Part shown: positions 4,001 to 57,700 of the stretch, piece by piece | Layout of the letters: every line of letters begins with the position of its first letter | How positions within the stretch are numbered: position 1 is the stretch's first letter | Assembly: GCA_904063045.1 (NCBI GenBank) | Contig: CAJFCJ010000014.1 | Span: 1,733,643-1,797,642 of the forward strand | Direction: 5' to 3' | From: Dimorphilus gyrociliatus | Lineage: Eukaryota > Animalia > Annelida | Length of the DNA stretch: 64,000 bases | Notes under the pieces: generated by a model | Told to the model about the DNA's origin: nothing | Seen by the model: only the letters and a program-made list of their open reading frames with translations | Databases searched by the model: none | Program-made: the position numbers and the translations under genes

Positions 4001-6773
4001 CTACATGTGCTCAGGATGATCTCTCAAACAATCTATAAATCTAGTTGGCGACAGGTCACCCACACATATGTAATGAACAGCCGTAAAAATAGGAAATCTG
4101 AAAATTATATTGTTTAAATTAAGTTGTTTGAAAGGTATCTTTAAGTATACCTATTCTCAAGATTATTCTTTCTGAGCATATGATTAACTTCTGCAGCTGT
4201 TATTGGACCTTGTAGACTTTGTCCATCTAACATTTCTATTTCAATTTCTTTGAGGCTCTGTTCATTAAAGCAATAAATTGTTGTTAGAATAGAGTCTATG
4301 GATAGTGGAATGGTTTGAGAGGAACCTTTTTCGGATATTGCCGAACATATGCCTCCGCACAACGTCTGTTTCTTCCACTATAACAGGTTGTAACAAGATC
4401 AGCTATTCCACAGCTTTCCAAAAACGTCTCAATTTTCGATTCTATTTATAAAAGTTCGTTAATAAGATTATGTTTTAGGTAAAACAGTATTAAAAATATC
4501 TATTTTCAGCCGTGCAAAATTAGAATATATAGATGAAATATAGTTATTTATATTTTACTATTTGTCATCAACCTAGATTAAGTCATTTGAATATGTTGAG
4601 TTAATCAATGAATTAGAATATTTAATAATTAGATCATAGTTTTAACATTAGCTGAGAAGGTATCAAATTAAATTGGTAATCTCAGTTTTAGTTACCGTAA
4701 TTTTTCTATAAGCAAATTAATACTAGAGGATTGATGAAAATACCCCTGATTGCAATGTTTTATCCAATTCTTATCTTAATAAGTAATAGTTTAAAATCGA
4801 TTGCGAAAACATCGAGCAAGATAGTTTAGGTATTCAAAAACAAAACGTACGCCCAAAAAATTCTTCAATGAATTTAACCATTTCCATTAATCCCAAACGG
4901 ATTACTGCTGCTTTTGTGTTATCTCCAAAGCCTAAACCTTCGGTAAATCCAGCACCAACTGCTACAATATTCTGTTGTGGGAAAACAAAAGAAAAAAACA
5001 GCAGAATAAACTGAATCTAACAATTCTACGCTAACATTTGGCACCATTCAACTGAAAAAGAAAATTGATCTCTTTTTAAAAAAAGCAAGATTTTACAATA
5101 GGTCATGCATTAGTTAGTACCACAATATTTGGGATAACTAGTTTTAAAAGTAGCAGTTGGTATTCAAAGATTCTGAAAAATGTCATTAATTTGGATAAGT
5201 CTATCTGAATTTTCTAGCTCTAAAGATTTTTCATCCTACTATTTATACAAATAGATATTGAAATAGATGAAAATATATCGAGAAATTTTTATGATAAGAT
5301 GTTACTCTCTTTAGGATAATTGACTAATGCACGGCTAAAAATAGCTTAAGAGTCCAAATAATTACGATTGTCAAGTAGAAGGTAGCATAGTCCCCGAATC
5401 TCGGCAAACCCTAAACGAACTACAGCGGCTTTTGTATTTGCAATCATGTCTAGAGCATCAGCTATTCCCGCGGCAATTTCCATTACGTCCTGCACTAATT
5501 TACTCGTTAAATGGTGCCAATAGAAGTATATTACAAGTGAAATACATGAACTTAAACATGAAAAAAAACGCATAAATAAATTTCGTTAGCTTGACATAGT
5601 CTGTTAACAATTAGATGTTACATGGCTAATTAAGTAAAAGTAACTATTATCTGTTTAATTACCAAATTTGAAGATTTAGTTAAGCGTTTATGATTAAATA
5701 GAAGTTACTGAAGAAGTTTTAAATTGGTAATGTTTACATAGGCCGTTAAGTATACACTATTTCCTATTGTATTAGACCTCAATAAAAGACATACACAACT
5801 ACTGAATACAGTTAATTCTATTAAGTATTTAACCTTCCCTAGAAAACAAAAACATTGTATTTTTTTTTAAAGAAAAGTTACTTGAGCAATATGTTAGAAT
5901 GTAAATTTATATGGTCGAGTATATTAAACATGGAGACCTGTTAATGATAAAAACAAATACCTCACCTTTAGAGCTCCGCAGAGCTCTACAGTTGCTTCGT
6001 CTTCCACAACTACTATTCTAAAGTAGGGAGTTTGCATTAAATCTTTGAAAGTATTACCTATATCCTTATCTTTGCAACCTATGAAATATGATTAATAGTA
6101 AAAAAAACTATCTTATGAAGCTATCTATGTTATAATAATTAAACAGTACCAATTGTTGCTTCACAATAATTCTCTCTAGCAACCTCGGAAGCAATATTAG
6201 CTCCCATTAAAACGGCGCAAGGTATAGACAGTTCTCGGCGAATCATATTCGAAATCAAATCTAATCCAGCTTCAGTAATGTCCAATCCCTTCAATAACAA
6301 CTTGAGTAAATAAAAAAACTAAAGAACAATTTTAAAAAACCTTAATTAAGGTAATTCCCACAGCACTTTCCTTTACTTTTCCTTTTAGTGTCTTACAAAT
6401 ATTTTTCATAAATTGGTGAGGGAGTACAAAAACCAATACGTCTGCATCAGATGCTGCTTCGATGACATCGGGAATAGCGACAACATTTGCAGGAACTTTA
6501 TGTCCGGGCAAATACTTGGTATTCTCATGGTCAGTATTAATAATTTCGGTTAATTTTCGTCCTTCAACCATCTCTTCAAAAACATACATTGACACAGAAG
6601 TCTCAAAATCCTTTGTGTTTTGAACATTATTTCCAATTATTTTGGCAATGACCATACCCCTATAAAAATATATATCTATATATGTATGTACAAACAAATA
6701 AATACAGCTGTGGCTAGAACAATTTTTTTTACCAATTTCCAGATCCAACTATGCATACTTTTTTTGGAGACAT
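4001..6773 (-). CDS. GPD1: NAD-dependent cytosolic glycerol-3-phosphate dehydrogenase (GPD1/GPD1L family), 350 aa with exon A
   Basis: Exons 6773-6733, 6659-6341, 6288-6150, 6078-5966, [4971-4851 or 5489-5366], 4441-4326, 4257-4151, 4097-4001, all GT-AG and in phase. Motifs [79 protein letters not shown]. Confidence 0.97.
4500..4516 (-). promoter_or_regulatory. Putative splicing docking site (pairs with 5328-5344)
   Basis: Plus-strand CTATTTTCAGCCGTGCA is the reverse complement of 5328-5344 apart from one position that forms G.U in the minus-strand transcript. Confidence 0.7.
4851..4971 (-). other. GPD1: GPD1 mutually exclusive exon A (canonical; [40 protein letters not shown])
   Basis: 121 nt, cag acceptor, gtacgt donor, phase 0 to phase 1; close to the canonical GPD1 sequence. 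Confidence 0.95.
5328..5344 (-). promoter_or_regulatory. Putative selector sequence downstream of GPD1 exon B
   Basis: Plus-strand TGCACGGCTAAAAATAG begins 21 nt after the exon B donor and forms 17 contiguous pairs with 4500-4516. Confidence 0.7.
5366..5489 (-). other. GPD1: GPD1 mutually exclusive exon B (divergent; [41 protein letters not shown])
   Basis: 124 nt, gcag acceptor, gtaatt donor, same phases (0 to 1) as exon A, open frame, homologous NTKAAV.RLG core. Confidence 0.85.
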
Positions 6774-10972: not shown

Positions 10973-13214
10973 ATGTCTTCATCAATCGTTATAGAACTAC
11001 TGAAAAGTGTCAATAAAGCAGCTTCACAAGACGATTTTGTCAATTTTTTGGGAAGTTCTTGTGGTAGAAATTTAATCCTAAATATTTTTAACAAAGGCGT
11101 AAAAGTAAGAATTGACTAAATTGTAAATTAATTTATTAAATGAAAATACTTTCATAGGGATTGGCAAACTTGAAGGAACTGATTGAATTGGTTGCATATA
11201 CAATACAATTTCTTTTAGATCGGATAAAAGAGGATGAACAAAGTATTGTTATTCTTTTATTTGTAAATATAAAATGAAAAGAAATTTTTAATAAGATAAA
11301 ATACTAGGGCGTACACACAATCGAACAACATGTTAGTAGAACGATTTATCTTTTTCTATTGATAGAAATATGCCATTTGAACTCTTTGCAATTTTTCATC
11401 AAAATAATCATAAAGTTACTCGAGTGCAAAAGATAATGCTATTAATTAAACTTAAATATTTCTTATTGAATTATTTATGTTAAACGTGGTTTGTCGTATT
11501 GAAAATATCATACTGATTTGTGAATATATTTTTGTTTTAGATAACTACGACCTAGAGTCTGTGGAACAATGCTTTACAGTACCAAAGAAGGTTGCAAAAC
11601 ACGTTTTATCGAATATACAAAAAGCGAATGATAAAGATAATGATGAAAATGTATTACATACTTCCAATGGTTTCTTAAAAGACATTGAGCTATTCAGACT
11701 AATTAACGATTTATTAATTATCTTATGTATCGAAGAATGTTCAACTCACAATGAAAAAGACACTAAAGATTGTATTTGTTTAAAGATACTCATTGATTTC
11801 TACAATTATCTAGAACAATGCAAGAGAAACAACATTCTGCACATCTTTCTCAGAACATTTTTCAAAATTTCCCGCGTGATTATTAATTATCATTCATCAA
11901 TGAATTATTGTACTTTTAATCAATTCGAAAAAATTCTAAAAACTCTAAAAACACTTGGAGAAATACAGGATTTTTGTCAAGAAACAATTATTGGATCATT
12001 TTGGATTTTAAAGAGCTTGTTAGAATTTTCTGACGTTTCTTCAATAACCGATATAGTAAGATCTGCTCATAATTTACTTGACAATTGGAATAACTTGGAA
12101 GAAGCTATGGACATGCATTTATTTAAGATAATATGTGGATTTATCAGCGATTTGAAAAAGGCTAAAGTTGAATTTTTACACGCTTGTCGATGTAGTAGAA
12201 TCAAGCACAAATCTTGTTTTAAACGTTATTCACATTTTACGCATCATCATCACGAAATTCTTAGTATCTATGATGATTGTATTATAAAGAGATTATCCAT
12301 TCTACTTATTTGTTTTTTGAATAAGTGCGATGATTTAGCTCTTACAATAACGATTGGAGAAATAAGAAAATGTGGCTTATGCTGTTGCTTATCTGTGGAG
12401 AATCTAACTTGCATTTTAGACAAGAATAAAGAAGATAGTCAACTATTAATTAATTGGATAGCCAACACTGTACTATACGAATTAGGTGGATATGATGCCG
12501 AATATTCTTTCTGTTCAAAATGCCAAAAATCAACGTTAGATCGTTGGAATTCCTTATCAAAGTTAATTAATTACACTGATCCAAAGAATACTACATTGAA
12601 AACGGATAATTTTAAAAGAATTGACCTAACAAAAATAGAAGATTTAGTTAAATACGGAAGTGACAATTTAATAAAAAGTTTATTGGAAAATATTTATGCA
12701 CAAATCGTTAAAGAATCAGGATTAAATTTTCACGATAGAATTCTTAATCATATTCTCAACGTATTTGTTCTCTGCCAAAAAAATTTAAAATTATGTGACT
12801 TTTTCCTTGATAAAATTGGAGTACGAATATTTCAATTGAATAGCTCGTGTCTGAATTTAGTGTTCAAATGTTTCCTCAAAATAATCTCTATAAAAAAGAA
12901 CAACGTTCAAGATATTGCTGAAATTATCTTTAAAGTAACAAAAAAACCAGGATTAACTACTGAAGAATCTACAGAATTATGGAAATCAGTTCATCTATTA
13001 ATATATTATAATGAAAATGCAAGAAACCTTTTTGTTAAAGGTAACGGAACGCGAGATGCTCTTGATACAGCTAAATCATGCATTGAAAAATTCGAAACTG
13101 ATAAAAACGAAGATTTAGTTTCAAACTTTTCTATTGCCTTTGCATGTTCTGTTCTATCATGCTTAGGGGTAAGTATAACAACTATAATACATTTGTTGAC
13201 AATGTATAGATACA

Positions 13215-13257
<43 letters not shown>

Positions 13258-16200
13258 TATTTTGCACGTAGTTCCCCTCGGCTAAAGGTCATGTTGTATC
13301 GGAAATACGCAAAGCATTGAAGTCCAATTTAAAGACATTACAAAAGAAATTAGTATGCGATCATCTCTTTCATCTTATACTTCTGAAAGAATTGAATAAC
13401 AAATCCCAGCCAAAATTCCTTCCACCTACAGATGCTAGTCAAATAAAATTTCAAACCAAAAAGAATTATGATGATGGCAGCGATTACGATGAATCATTCT
13501 CAAATGATACAGGTTATTATTATAATAAATATTACGTGTACCGTTATTCAAGTGTTAATAACCTAGTAAATTTTCCGTTTTTTTAGCCTCATATTTGGAA
13601 TTTTCTATCGAACCGATCAAACTTATTCATTTTGAATTTATTGAACTTTGTTTGACCTTATCCGATTCTCATGAAAATGATTATGATCAATATGTGCTAA
13701 TGAAAATAAGAGAGTTAATTAGAAATTCCAAGTCGATAAGAACTTATTATATTGAGAACAATCTACCAAAATTGCTATTAGACAAATACTTGCAAGTTGA
13801 CGACGATGGTCTGTATCATTAAATTGAATCTTTCAAATAATGTATTTTTTAATATTTCCAATAAAACTAGATATTCGAAGAGAATGCTTGAATGTTTATA
13901 TGGAACTAATTATTGAAGATATGAATTCTTATTTATTATCCGAGTTTATTCGATTATTATTTCATAAAACTACGAAAAACATTGACCCATTTTTGGATAT
14001 ACTTTTAAAACATTCAGATTTTGAACAATCACCATCGTTTTATCTTCAGTTTCCAATGATTAAATTAAAGGAGACGGAGCCGAACCAAACTGAAATAAGT
14101 CCAAGTGATTCAAGTATTCCACAAATGTTCAAGGAATCATCGACGTGTTTAAAAGTTGAGGAAAAAATCATTTGGCCTTCTGTTGGTTCTGATTGGTCAA
14201 TATCAATTTGGATTGCATTTCATAAAGAATTGGAAAGTAAGATAGACTGTAAGGAAATGTTTATTTTTAGTTTTGGAAGTGAAAATTTTATAATTGAAAT
14301 ATGGTGGAATGTTCAAAAGATGAGAATTTTTTACAAGTTTGTCTAGAAAGAAATGATTACTTAATTAAAAAGTTAATTATTCTTTTATATGACAGATTTA
14401 TATATAAGGAAAATTCAGAAAACTTTGAATTAAAATATAACTTACAATCTAATGGAAAATGGAAAAATTATTGCTTTTCATATTTTGAAAGAAATGTAGA
14501 CAAAGTTAAAGAATTTACGGTAAAAAAATTATATATTTTTAATGAAATTAACTTCTTTTAAAACAATTTAAATAAATATAGCTGATATTATTTGTTGATG
14601 GAAAAGAAGTTGACAAAGTTACAAGCTGCTATACAAACATAACAAATACCTCAATAAGTCAATTTCTAATCGGGCATTGTCTCCAATCGCCCATTGATTC
14701 AATTATTACAACTTCTACCTATCATCTAAGTACATTAATGTTCTTTCAAGATGTAACACTAAGCAAAGAAAAAGCAATGTTTATGTATATTTTGGGGCCA
14801 AATACTGATAACTTGTTCGAATGCGACAATTTACAAACAAATATTGGATTTGTACATTCTGTTTTAGTAAAACATATTTTGGAAAGTGGCTTAGATGTTG
14901 AAGGAGTTTTGGAAAGGATAAATGATAATTATCACATTTTAAGGGTAAGATATTTACAATTTTCCAATTGAATGAATGCAACCAAAAATAACCAAAACTA
15001 TGTACAGAAACACGTTAAATTGATATACAACGCTCGTTGTCCAAAATCCTATTGCCTTCTAAATGTGCCGGACCCGAATCCACTTCCTTTTGCTTCTAAT
15101 TCAATAGATAAAGCAATTATGGAGCATCCGTTAGAACTACAAGCCGATACTGTTATGTTGGAGAGTAAACGGTCGAATTCTATTGAAGAGTCGCTGATTT
15201 GTATTGGTGGAGCAGAATTATTATTATTTTTATATGCCAAGGTAAATTGTTTTTTTTTTGTTTTTTTTCCAAAAACTATTGAATATGTGTTTATTTTCAT
15301 CAGACTGTAGAAATGTCGAACGATTCCCAGAGTCAGACGAAAAGCTTGCAATTATTACTGGAAATTGCTAAACGTAGTCGAACAATTGCCAAAGAATTTG
15401 ACGGATTGTCAAGTTATGAATTACTAATAAAAGTTTTCTCAACTGATTTATTTATCATGTCAGCTGATTTTTTAAAGGTTATAATTTTCTTCAATCGCAT
15501 AATAATTACCTTATTTAAAGATAAAAATTTACTATTATTAGATTCTTATGGATGCTGCTTATAATGAATCAGTTATTATTATAAAAGAAACGCTTACAGT
15601 TAAAAATTCGACCAGTTTTTGCGTTTTGGACGCTCGTATTGTAACAGAAATATTTCTAGCTTGGAAATTATGGATTCAATACGAAGATTTATGGATTTAT
15701 GCTTTAAAGTCAATCGAAATTCTTCTTGACGATACGAATAGATGTAAAATATATAATGTTAAAATGTTGAGCGAATTAGAATTCTTGGAAAAATTAAAAA
15801 ATATGTGTTTAGAGTGTAAACAAGAAGCTGATTTTAAGAGTTTCTTCTCACCAAATATTTGCCAACTTCTAATTTCTATATTTAGAAAAATATTAAGGGC
15901 CGTAAGCGATGTACATGCAGTGGTAACCATTGCCGATCTACTCCTACTTTTACACCCTGCTGCACTAACTTACGTTCAACATTCCCCCTCTGGTTTTTAC
16001 TTTAATCCTAGCTGGCGTAAGTATATAGAAAATAAATTCATAAGGAACATACTAGTTTAGACTAATATTGTTTTATCTAGTAAGAAGGAAGTCGATAAGA
16101 AGAAGTGATCGAATATATATTTATTCAACTTCGTCTTCATGTTCAACACTTAAACAGTCGAATGACCATAATCAGAACTTGGAAGATCCTGAAATTGAGA

Positions 16201-17765
16201 ATAGGACTCCTTCGTCAAATTCAGCTAACACTAGTAGTACTGGTTCCGAATGGGAGCTATTACCAAATGCAGAGTCTACTCAATCAGTTACGGTTAACAT
16301 TAAGAAAACACCTGGCGAGGTTCACGTACCGGAGGAGGAAGATATTGGTTTAGTACAACTGTGCTCTGGATTGTTAGAAGCTGTCGATGATGTACTTTAT
16401 TCTATGGATAAGAAAGATGTAGAAAGAATATTCAAAGTAGTTGTTAAAGCTGATTTTATAATAATTCTCGCTCAGCATTCTGCTGATTGTGTTAGACTTA
16501 CTGCTTGTAAGGTAAGAATAAATTAGCTTCTTAATCATAAGAGTGATTATTCATAAACTATATAATCTTTAAATTTTATAATTCAGCTTATGAAAACGTT
16601 TCTGAAAATGGCCAATTGCGCCCAAATTGAGAAGCTTAGAGAGCAATACGCTTTCCAACTATTAGCTTTCCAGTTACATCAACACAATGTTTGCAGTCGT
16701 ATAGTGGATTGTCTATTATCAATTTGCTTTGAAAGGGATTTAACTCTATATGAACTATAGTAATTTATTTTTGTTATATCTTTAAACTTTAGAGATCAAC
16801 TGTCTTTTAATAATATTTTGCTATTCTTTTTTTAGTTCATCCCCGAATTTAGTCAATAATATTACACTCCATGAAATATCAATCCATTCTTTAATCGCTT
16901 ACATTGCTCTACTGGAAAATTGCTGTACAGATAATCCTAAATTATGTTGTAATATGCTGGACGTTTTATCAACTGTATTACTACCGAAAAAGCCTATATA
17001 TAATCTGCTAAGAACTAATTTTCTATGCACGGTATTATGTAACGTGCTCTACAAAGCTACAAGTTTTTGCGAAAATGATAAAATATTCGATTCAGTTGGA
17101 AATTGTTTTCGAACTATCATACTACTCGATTTTAAGTGAGGTTTTAACATAGATTTTTAATAGCTTTTCAATTTTGTTCAATAATCTTTTTTTTAGCGAA
17201 GACGATCCCAAAACATTGTGTCTTTTTAAAGAAATAATAACGCTTTTAAGATCTCTAATAGAAAAAGCTACTGAGAATAGAGTTATTTTTGAAAGAATTA
17301 TTTGCAATTGTTTCCTTCACGTGTTTGAGTTCTGTATGGATTTAAAATTAAAACTTGAAAAGAAAAACGATGTAGACGTTGGCAATCACGCTCAACGTTT
17401 ATTAACAATAATAGTATTTGCTACGGAATATATTGTATATGATGGTATGTTTTCCTCTTTTTATATCTAATTAATATAATGTTTTTTTTTGGTTTAACTT
17501 CAGATTTAAGTTACGAAGATAAATTCGAAAGAAAGTATACTTGTGATCATACAAAGCTAACTAAATATTTCTTACAATTCCTTTTAAAGTATACACACAT
17601 TTGTTTAGTAAGTAAAAACAATTGTATTTATTTTGTTATTAATTATATAAGAATTATAAATATTGTTTAGAAGCGATTTAGTCCGTTCCATTCCAAAAAT
17701 TCTCTCAAAGTTTTATACGACAATAAAGACGTTGTATTTTCACAAGTAAGACAACCATAACATAG

Positions 17766-31175: not shown

Positions 31176-31568
31176 TGGGACTTACTAAAACTGGACAGTA
31201 ATTTTCCAACATACTGAATGAAACTTTTTATACTAAGCTTTTAATAAAAAACCCTGTTGTAACTATTTGCCAATTTTTGCAATGGTCCCTCTCATATTTT
31301 TTTCTATATATAAATTCAGCAAAGATACCTTGGCTGGCGCCTAACAGCCTGCATTTCTTTCTCAGGCGCTGTACTCGAATTGTGTAATAATATAATTATA
31401 CTATTTGTAAGGTAAAACATGGAAGAAATAATTAAATTAGTTATTACAACATAAAGTGTTCAAGTTCTATGTAATTTTCATTTTTGAGTCAAAGTTATAT
31501 TATTTTTAAATATTTAAATATTTTAGTATTTCCTCAGTAAAATGATAATCCTGTTTTAGTAAGTCCCA
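31176..31568. mobile_element. Possible MITE-like fold-back element with 20-bp inverted ends
   Basis: TGGGACTTACTAAAACTGGA (31176-31195) versus TCCTGTTTTAGTAAGTCCCA (31549-31568) match 19/20 as reverse complements. No clean TSD. Confidence 0.45.
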
Positions 31569-54715: not shown

Positions 54716-57700
54716 ATGACGTCGCCAAGAATTGTGCCGGAAATGCAATCTTCATACAGCGTTTCAAAGCAGAATCTGAAAAAAAATGGATCGTCAGCTA
54801 TAACTCAATTTAGGATTCTTTGCCGGAAAAATTTTCTTTTGGTCAGTAGCAGTAAAGGTCAGCTTGCCATCGAATTATTGATACCTCTATGCCTGGGACT
54901 TCTGTTCTTCACGTTAAGAAATGTAATTAAACCAGAGGTATTCGATCAACCAACTGTTTGGTCAGCATTTCCTGCTAAAGAATTTACAAATGTAAGTCAT
55001 TTTACATATAGAATAAGGACAAGAACAAGAGAATATTGAAAGTCTGTCAAAATCAAATAAAATAATCCAATTCTCTTTACAGAAAACGAATGGAACATAC
55101 CTACAAATTTATTCTACACCCAAGAATGCTCTTACAGAACGACTGGCCGAAAGTGCTCGAAATTTTCTTAATATCTCTAATCGACCTAAATGGTATGATA
55201 AAGAATCCGATTTGGAAGCAGATATCGTAAAACAACGTGGAGACGATTATAAGAATGCTATTGGTATCATATTTAAAGAAATGGATAATGGTAAACTTGC
55301 CGATGAGGCAGTCTATTCTTTAAGATTCCCTACCGATCCTGATGGAAAACTTGGTGCAAAGGATTGGTTTACTAGGGGTGTACAGAGACAATTTATTACA
55401 TTAAGTCCTGTAGAAAAGGATGTTATTTATGGAGCTGATCCAAGCTATGCCGAAACTGGGTTTTTACCATTACAATTAGCTATAAATAGGGCATTATTGA
55501 GAGAGCGTTCGTCACAAATTAGCGAATCCTACTTTGACATATTAATGAACAGACTACCTCATCCACATTATACTAGTGATCCAATTCCGACAATGATGCC
55601 CTTCCTCGCATTCATAATATTTATATCATTCAACGTTAATACGCTAAATTTTATTAGAGGCGTTGTACTAGAGAAAGAGAAACGCCTTAAGGTATATACA
55701 GTAGATATATATATATATGTACTAATATATATTTTTTATATTTGCAATTTACAGGAACTGATGAAAATTTGTGGCTTAAAAAGTTCCCTTAATTGGTTCG
55801 CTTGGATACTGAGATCTATGATTGTACTCGTAGTCGTTTCATTGTTGTTTACATTCTTTTTATGTGTACAAACAAAAAATGGAGCATTCTTAGCAAAGAG
55901 TGATCCATCACTCATTTTCGTATTCTTTCTCATGTACGGAATGTCAGTTCTTTCCTATTGCTGTATAGTCTCAGCTATTTTTTCTCAAGGTTGTACTATT
56001 TTATTTCACTAGGAAACAATAATAACTTATAATCTTTTTTAAATAAATAGCCAGAGCTGCTGCAACAGTTGGATCATTATTTAGTTTCTTCACCTATATG
56101 CCAAATTTTTTCCTAGCCAATAGATGGGAAGCAGTATCCACAGGTGCGAAATGGGGAACTGGAGTACTATACAATATGGCTTTGGTACATGGATGGACAT
56201 TATTTCAACTTCATGAAACAGCTGGCTATGGAGCTAAATGGTCCAATATCAATTCTTATGTGACAGTTGATCAGAATTTCAAAATAGCTAATGTACTTAT
56301 ACTTTTCACCATTGATATTGTTGTTTACCTTTTTATTGCTTGGTATTTGGACAACGTATTTCCGGGGCCATATGGTATTCCAAAACCACCATATTTTCTA
56401 TGTAGTAAGGCATTTTGGACAGGTAGTCCTGTTGAAACAGATAATTTTACAGAAGAAATAAATGACACTCAGTTGAATGATATGTTCGAAAAACCTACGG
56501 ACAACCTAAATATAGGCATAAGAGTAAGGAAGCTTGAAAAATCTTTCAGTGTGAGAGGAAAGAAAACTAAAGCTGTTAATGGACTTGATATGGACATCTT
56601 TGAAGGTCAAATAACTGCTCTACTCGGCCACAATGGTGCCGGCAAATCGACAGCGATGGCCATGTTAACTGGTCTTTTAAAACCAAGCGGCGGAAATGCT
56701 TATATTAATGGTCACAGCATAAAAACAGATATAGAAGGTGCTCGACAGCAGTTAGGCTATTGTCCTCAAGATAATGTTGTGTTTGATCTATTAACTGTTG
56801 AACAACATTTGAGATTCTTTGCCGAACTTAAAGGATGTCAAAAGGAAAATTTACAACGAGAAATTGATGATACAATCAATCTCCTTGGGTTAAATGATAA
56901 GAGAAAAGATTTTGCAGGTAAGTTGTCCGGTGGTCAAAAGAGAAGACTGTGCATTGGTATTGCCTTGATTAATGGATCAAATACTTTAATTTTGGACGAG
57001 CCAACAGCTGGTCTGGATCCGGAAGCCAGGAGAAAAATGTGGGACATACTACAAAAGATAAGAAACGAAAAAACCATAATATTGGCTACTCATTTTATGG
57101 ATGAAGCCGATCTTTTGGGTGATCGTATAGGAATTATGGCGAATGGTCAATTGCAATGTATAGGATCTAGTTTGTTTCTAAAATCGAAATTCGGAGTTGG
57201 ATATCATTTGGTAATGGCAAAAGCATCTAATTGTGACGTTGACAAGATATCACAAACAATTAGACAGTATGTTCCAAATGCACTTCTGGAATCGAACATC
57301 AGTTCAGAACTATCGTATATTCTGCCGAAAGAAAGTTCTGAAAACTATGAGGAAATGTTCAGAGATATTGAAGATAATCTGGAAACTTTAGGAATCACTT
57401 CATTCGGAGTTTCTATAACAACAATGGAAGAAGTTTTCCTAAAAGTTGGAGAAATTACAAACGCTGATGGAATAGAACGCCTTAAAAAAACTGAAGATTC
57501 AAAGGAACTGTTGGGGGAAAATACGGATTTTACCCAACTGGAAGCAAATGTTTTATTTCAATCAAAAACTTTGCAAGATTTCAATTTTACTTTCGAACAA
57601 CTGAAAAGTCAATTTTCAAAGAAACTCTCAGTTACATTAAATAATAGGATTTTGGCTTTCTTTCAGATGATTTTTCCTGAAATTTTAGTTTTATTAGCAG

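Follow-up and report, generated by a model that had tools for sequence, protein, structure and literature searches.

The GPDH locus and its tandem exons

The 64-kb stretch of the Dimorphilus gyrociliatus genome considered here (contig CAJFCJ010000014.1, positions 1,733,643 to 1,797,642; this whole stretch of 64,000 nucleotides is called the window) carries on its minus strand a gene for cytosolic NAD-dependent glycerol-3-phosphate dehydrogenase (GPDH; GPD1-like), in which two homologous exons, designated B and A, lie in tandem within a cluster of long introns. The subject of this analysis is P2, a 17-bp RNA duplex between two introns of this cluster which would loop out exon A, together with two further helices, P1 and P3, and the choice between the two exons that these helices may govern. 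Membership of the GPD1 family is indicated by homology along the protein, including residues 205-242 of human GPD1, which are matched by the translation of exon A with E = 3e-14, and by the PF01210 and PF07479 domains on the open reading frames (ORFs) of relatives. The exon borders were fixed by spliced contigs from three public RNA runs belonging to three studies (X1, X2 and X3); marine and coral metatranscriptomes are among the RNA runs that contain sequence of the locus. In the direction of transcription, the exons are the following.

6656-6340, minus strand: exon, from spliced contigs
6287-6148, minus strand: exon, from spliced contigs
6076-5966, minus strand: exon 4, constitutive upstream exon, with contig junctions 6076 to 6148 and 5966 to 4971; ends with a Lys codon
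5489-5366, minus strand: exon B, 124 nt, phase 0, recognized by homology to exon A and GPD1; donor GT at 5365-5364
4971-4851, minus strand: exon A, 121 nt, the canonical exon found in all transcripts, from spliced contigs of X1, X2 and X3
4441-4326, minus strand: exon 6, constitutive downstream exon, with junctions 4851 to 4441 and 4326 to 4257; acceptor AG at 4443-4442
4257-4151, minus strand: exon, from spliced contigs
4097 onward, minus strand: exon, from spliced contigs

As exon A aligns to GPD1 residues 205-242, the equivalent of Lys204 is encoded by the last codon of exon 4, and that of Asn205 by the codon with which exon A opens. Exon B is a diverged duplicate of exon A that spans GPD1 residues ~205 to 245 and has kept the NTKAAV core. 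Both exons are of phase 0 and end in one base of a split codon, and the reading frame is open with exon A alone or exon B alone, whereas inclusion of both or of neither leads to a premature stop. At the Asn205 position exon B starts with an Asp codon (5489-5487) in contrast to the Asn codon of exon A (4971-4969), and GFGDNTK of exon A has become DMIANTK; with these differences isoform B would deviate from isoform A in the active-site region. The introns of the cluster measure 476, 394 and 409 nt, compared with 52-75 nt for the other introns of the gene. The acceptor of exon B has a weak polypyrimidine tract, that of exon A a strong pyrimidine tract.

The 17-bp duplex P2

A preliminary description of the window had proposed that exon A is looped out by a 17-bp duplex with one G.U pair between 5344-5328 and 4516-4500, and this duplex is indeed present, in a geometry that agrees in the placement of both arms and in the 811-nt loop that contains exon A.

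5328-5344, minus strand: 5' arm of P2 (upstream selector), 21 nt past the exon B donor; forms a 17-bp helix with 4516-4500
4500-4516, minus strand: 3' arm of P2 (downstream docking element), ending 58 nt before the exon 6 acceptor AG

On the level of the DNA, the two arms constitute an inverted repeat of 17 nt with 94% complementarity and a separation of 811 nt. In the sense RNA each of the 17 positions is paired, one of them as U.G, where the plus strand would give A.C. The ungapped stacking energy of P2 amounts to -30.5 kcal/mol and its duplex energy to -28.5 kcal/mol. A whole-intron RNAduplex run was uninformative, giving an end-to-end interior-loop structure, and an ungapped stacking-energy scan with shuffles was used instead. 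The comparison with shuffled introns that had been suggested as a check turned out in favour of the duplex: in 2000 dinucleotide-shuffled versions of the two introns, -30.5 kcal/mol was never reached (mean -15.7, standard deviation 1.9, best -29.1). When the same geometry was slid over the window on both strands, the P2 energy was reached by 3 of 842 segment pairs, P2 included, and a helix of this kind is therefore rare in the window, yet not unique. As a dispersed repeat, the sequence of the P2 arms does not occur in the 64-kb window.

Two other structures of the window may be mentioned here. An inverted repeat of 30 nt with 83% complementarity is located at 31176-31205 and 31539-31568, with its arms 333 nt apart and a core that scores like the GPDH duplex in the window-wide scan. 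Within 54978-55900 on the minus strand, a 17-bp helix with G.U pairs and the 5' arm GATGAGGTAGTCTGTTC reaches -31.4 in that scan, and this helix does not register as an inverted repeat of the DNA.

Relatives and conservation of the cluster

With the reading frame across exon B as query, a single protein, P0001, was retrieved from the Logan assemblies, with the contigs L007 (20 kb), L008 and L009. The large exon as query led to a third lineage, L010, the contig of which stops inside exon B, such that the comparison covers the 5' arm of P1. In GPDH genes of greater distance, L001-L006 and L011 with an amino-acid identity of 62-66%, an exon of the A type is the only one present; a metagenome scan with the large exon yielded nothing closer than genes of 62% identity, which do not help with the introns. 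Outside P0001, which is a genomic ORF of one relative, no B-like peptide was detected among 5.8 billion proteins and 1.84 billion cluster representatives, and the protein searches returned no transcript-derived fragment resembling exon B. The absence of B-like peptides elsewhere indicates that the duplication is specific to this lineage. On L007, a BBS9/PTHB1-like gene is located at 12686-16446, downstream of GPDH and on the opposite strand.

Between the window and L007 (alignment A1), identity amounts to 86-90% in the exons, to 63% in intron B-A with 28 gap columns and to 60% in intron A-6 with 231 gap columns. Deep inside the introns, the five longest stretches free of differences, 5521-5504, 5344-5328, 5160-5146, 5057-5036 and 4516-4500, are precisely those of the arms of P1, P2 and P3. 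Both runs of P2 are 17 nt in length with ends that coincide with the ends of the duplex, and no identical run other than 4516-4500 exceeds 12 nt in intron A-6. A four-pair extension past a 3-nt bulge that had been described (5327-5324 with 4523-4520) is found in the window, but its sequence is not kept in L007, which has a different 3-bp A/U extension. The arms of the two additional helices are located as follows.

5506-5520, minus strand: 5' arm of P1 (upstream docking element), 17-31 nt before the exon B acceptor; holds the likely branch site TTTAAC
5038-5052, minus strand: 3' arm of P1 (downstream selector), 67-81 nt before the exon A acceptor; inside a 22-nt identical island at 5057-5036
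5150-5162, minus strand: 5' arm of P3, intronic, complementary to the start of exon A
4953-4965, minus strand: 3' arm of P3, in exon A; forms a 13-bp helix with 5162-5150

P1 (5520-5506 with 5052-5038) is a helix of 15 bp with one U.G that encloses exon B, with a duplex energy of -24.7 kcal/mol in the window and -24.4 in L007, and its 5' arm is identical in the three species represented by the window, L007 and L010. P3 has an energy of -22.1 in the window and -23.7 kcal/mol in L007. Both belong to the ten best helices of the window-wide scan, in a cluster of ~1.1 kb. P1 crosses P2 and P3, P3 is nested in P2, and P1 and P2 have no nucleotides in common. An internal U.G, which pairs on the sense transcript only, is present in P1 as well as in P2, and P3 has a terminal one; these wobbles make the stems specific to the strand.

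Of the helices that the two species share in the region from exon 4 to exon 6, P2 ranks first (17 bp, 7 G-C), P1 second (15 bp, 6 G-C) and P3 third (13 bp, 6 G-C), compared with a maximum of 13 bp with 1 G-C in the parallel-orientation control. P3 displays one compensatory change, from A in the intron and T in the exon of the window to G and C in L007, which on the exon side is synonymous (GGT to GGC). That the cluster harbours a conserved RNA structure is well supported by this sequence comparison, from which we infer a function in splicing.

Two weaker candidates for competition over the P2 arms were discounted, since 9-11 bp helices that seem to carry compensatory changes arise equally often in the parallel-orientation control. 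P4 (5333-5325 with 5112-5104), which would join the 3' half of the P2 5' arm to a UGCAUG element of intron B-A and has a T-A pair that is A-T in L007, has 9 bp and is within the control noise, and P5 (5057-5049 with 4512-4504), a possible weak second selector which involves the TTTCA flank of the P1 3' arm, has 9 bp including two G.U and is at chance level.

Other sequence elements were noticed in the introns. Intron B-A contains on the minus strand a perfect UACUAAC at 5119-5113 followed by UGCAUG at 5109-5104, the latter kept in L007; UGCAUG is the RBFOX-type motif, and here it follows exon B and precedes exon A. In intron 4-B, a conserved island at 5775-5797 on the minus strand includes a 15-nt run identical to L007 around 5791-5777. 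No conserved complementary partner of at least 10 bp for this island was found anywhere in the cluster, and it may be a protein-binding splicing element.

A putative bidirectional switch

These observations make it probable that the two tandem, homologous and frame-compatible GPDH exons are surrounded by a bidirectional RNA-pairing switch of which P2 forms the downstream half. P1 would loop out exon B, cover its likely branch site and draw the exon A acceptor forward, such that exon A is favoured. P2 would loop out exon A and place the donor of exon B, which is 924 nt away from the acceptor of exon 6, at an effective distance of 80-100 nt from it, close to the length of the remaining introns of the gene (52-75 nt); this would favour the joining of exon B to exon 6. 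P3, within P2, would mask the start of exon A. The cluster would thus adopt either P1, leading to exon A, or P2 with P3, leading to exon B. That the stems form in vivo and steer exon choice is inferred, and the direction of the choice, with P1 selecting exon A and P2 exon B, is proposed by analogy with the Drosophila gene srp.

The preliminary description had viewed P2 as an RNA-structure switch in which the unpaired state gives exon A and the paired state exon B. A function at the RNA level is backed by the conservation of the arms; the one-stem rule is too simple in the presence of P1 and P3. Equilibrium folding of the whole region places P2 in the structure of minimum energy for the window and for L007 alike, with pair probabilities of 0.98 and 0.88, and as a helix predicted to be formed nearly always is accompanied by the observation of exon A, pairing of P2 alone is insufficient for exon B. 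With P1 looping out exon B and P3 at exon A, the bidirectional model of srp fits better than a single stem or the scheme of Dscam exon 6. The dominance of exon A may be due to the order of transcription, the arms of P1 being transcribed ~520 nt before the 3' arm of P2, together with the weak acceptor of exon B.

Several points weigh against the bidirectional switch. P1 is disfavoured in equilibrium folding by 4.4 and 1.9 kcal/mol in the two species, and with P2 the more stable helix one would expect a plain thermodynamic switch to prefer exon B, which is the opposite of what the RNA data show. As P1 and P2 share no nucleotides and have loops of more than 150 nt, a long-range pseudoknot is possible, and mutual exclusion of the two stems is assumed. 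No covariation was found in P1 or P2, the arms of which are invariant; of the support that had been expected from orthologous introns, perfect retention of both P2 arms in L007 materialized and covariation did not. As the comparison comprises two species in the case of P2 and P3 and three in that of the 5' arm of P1, it is conservation, not compensation, that carries the case. On the side of the transcripts, no junctions to 5489 or 5366 were present in the contigs of X1, X2 and X3, and a contig of X3 spans 5031-5995, passing through exon B, unbroken at intron depth.

A more elaborate version of the switch, which is doubtful as a whole, would have a ~1.1-kb device with two nested states, P1 versus P2 with P3, in which transcription order favours exon A and stability exon B, such that the Asn/Asp choice at the active site is coupled to elongation rate, temperature or metabolic state. 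The device would be one of many in the genome, and bidirectional pairing would have arisen independently outside arthropods and vertebrates.

Possible use of exon B and alternative explanations

Exon B differs between the window and L007 at 17 positions, distributed as 5/0/12 over the first, second and third codon positions, with 15 synonymous and 2 non-synonymous changes, and its coding constraint is strong (dN 0.022, dS 0.83). The flanking AG and GT, the length and the phase are kept in L007, and similarity drops a few bases past the donor. This pattern of differences is the signature of a translated exon, and coding selection of this kind argues for a use of exon B somewhere. The junctions present in the three RNA runs are 5966 to 4971 and/or 4851 to 4441, that is, joins of exon 4 to exon A and of exon A to exon 6 only; since assembled contigs lose minor paths, exon B can account for no more than a minor isoform in the samples concerned. 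In X3, read depth is ~100-260 over the long introns (4442-4850 and 4972-5965) compared with ~2200 on the exons, and the introns of 52-75 nt are cleanly spliced, which points to the long introns of the cluster being removed slowly or retained.

The stems might also be functional with exon B being unproductive today, in which case, instead of switching between protein isoforms, they would tune the splicing of the long introns or drive an unproductive splicing, with frameshifted and degraded products, that sets GPDH levels. BRD2 and BRD3 reportedly undergo unproductive splicing under the control of RNA structure, which is counted in favour of such a role, and exon A being the only variant seen in the three RNA runs, the premature stop upon double inclusion or double skipping and the long introns remaining in X3 at 5-12% of exon depth, suggestive of slow removal, are likewise compatible with it, as is the adaptation of splicing in D. 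gyrociliatus to short introns (PMC7854359). This explanation is nevertheless judged unlikely, as the predominance of synonymous changes and the lack of any change at second codon positions speak against a decoy, and exon B has retained its frame, its length class and its homology to exon A.

Considerably less probable still is that the two P2 arms are separately conserved protein-binding sites or single-stranded signals with a coincidental complementarity. Conserved intronic islands without a pairing partner do exist in the cluster, namely 5797-5775 and the UGCAUG at 5109-5104, and P2 lacks a compensatory change, but coincidence would have to account for the pairing of every one of the 17 positions and for conserved runs that stop exactly at the helix ends on both arms. 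The second pair of arms in P1 behaves likewise, P3 adds its compensatory change, and the parallel-orientation control offers nothing comparable. Hardly credible is an inverted repeat with a role on the DNA level only, be it as a DNA-binding palindrome or as terminal repeats left around exon A by an old mobile element, since, despite inverted repeats of similar size elsewhere in the window such as 31176-31205 with 31539-31568, the arm sequence is not repeated in the window, the interior has diverged and the arms have not, the mismatch is a wobble on the transcribed strand only and the positions of the arms are typical of selector and docking elements.

Comparison with known systems

The closest parallel to the bidirectional switch proposed for GPDH is exon 4.1/4.2 of Drosophila srp, where four conserved intronic elements form an upstream stem which promotes the distal exon and a downstream stem which is needed for the proximal exon, and where disruption of both stems results in skipping and double inclusion (Yue et al., 2016; PMC4691838). 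As in srp, GPDH has two tandem, compatible alternative exons, with a single element preceding the first variant, a pair of elements in the intron that separates the variants and a fourth ahead of the downstream constitutive exon, all four islands being perfectly kept in L007, and two crossing stems, P1 of 15 bp and P2 of 17 bp, each of which loops out one variant and would select the other. GPDH differs from srp in that it is a metabolic enzyme gene with element sequences unrelated to those of srp, in that its upstream element abuts the exon B acceptor and branch site, whereas the srp element is located just after the upstream exon, and in that a further conserved stem, P3, links exon A itself to the middle intron. 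Furthermore, one of the two GPDH isoforms is observed and the other is predicted from the sequence.

The preliminary description had likened P2 to the downstream docking-site pairing of Drosophila genes, a comparison which is correct with respect to position and geometry. According to the summary of Yang et al. (2011) in PMC4691838, the docking element before the constitutive exon in the Dscam1 clusters of exons 4 and 9 and in 14-3-3zeta pairs with an element right past a variant exon, by which the intervening variants are looped out and the donor of that exon comes close to the common acceptor, as with P2. In that account several selectors compete for one docking sequence, whereas a single convincing selector is seen for 4516-4500. 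Selector competition of the Dscam exon 6 type was not found in the GPDH cluster, as there is no overlap between the arms of P1 and those of P2, and other partners of the P2 arms reach 9 bp only, which does not exceed the parallel-orientation control.

Human ATE1 provides a further case of mutually exclusive exons, 7a and 7b, under the control of conserved intronic complementary regions (Kalinina et al., 2020; PMC7797038). Its outcome depends on co-transcriptional folding (PMC7797038), a kinetic effect like the one proposed here for the dominance of exon A. In ATE1 the regions R1 and R4 compete for R3 and a 30-kb stem biases the choice, in contrast to the stems of GPDH, which share no nucleotides and occupy ~1.1 kb in total. 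With regard to the origin of such an arrangement, tandem duplication of an exon together with partial stem-loops has been predicted to yield a bidirectional pattern (Ivanov and Pervouchine, 2018; PMC6071210), which is the layout of GPDH. The intron flanks of GPDH exons B and A have no residual similarity to each other beyond that of shuffles, which speaks neither for nor against such an origin.

Significance

Long-range RNA pairing over mutually exclusive exons has been tested mainly in insects (Dscam1, 14-3-3zeta and srp) and in few mammalian genes (ATE1). A search of a paper library returned no report of the control of mutually exclusive exons by long-range pairing in an annelid, nor of such control for GPDH. 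The short introns of the GPDH gene agree with the median intron of 66 bp in D. gyrociliatus (PMC7854359). With three short stems within 1.1 kb and other introns of ~60 nt, the gene would be a handy natural model for kinetic versus thermodynamic exon choice, subject to the practical limit that exon A is the sole isoform observed so far. The swapped exon starts at the residue that adjoins the catalytic lysine. If the bidirectional switch proposed for GPDH is true, the bidirectional model would come to include a further animal lineage and an enzyme of core metabolism.

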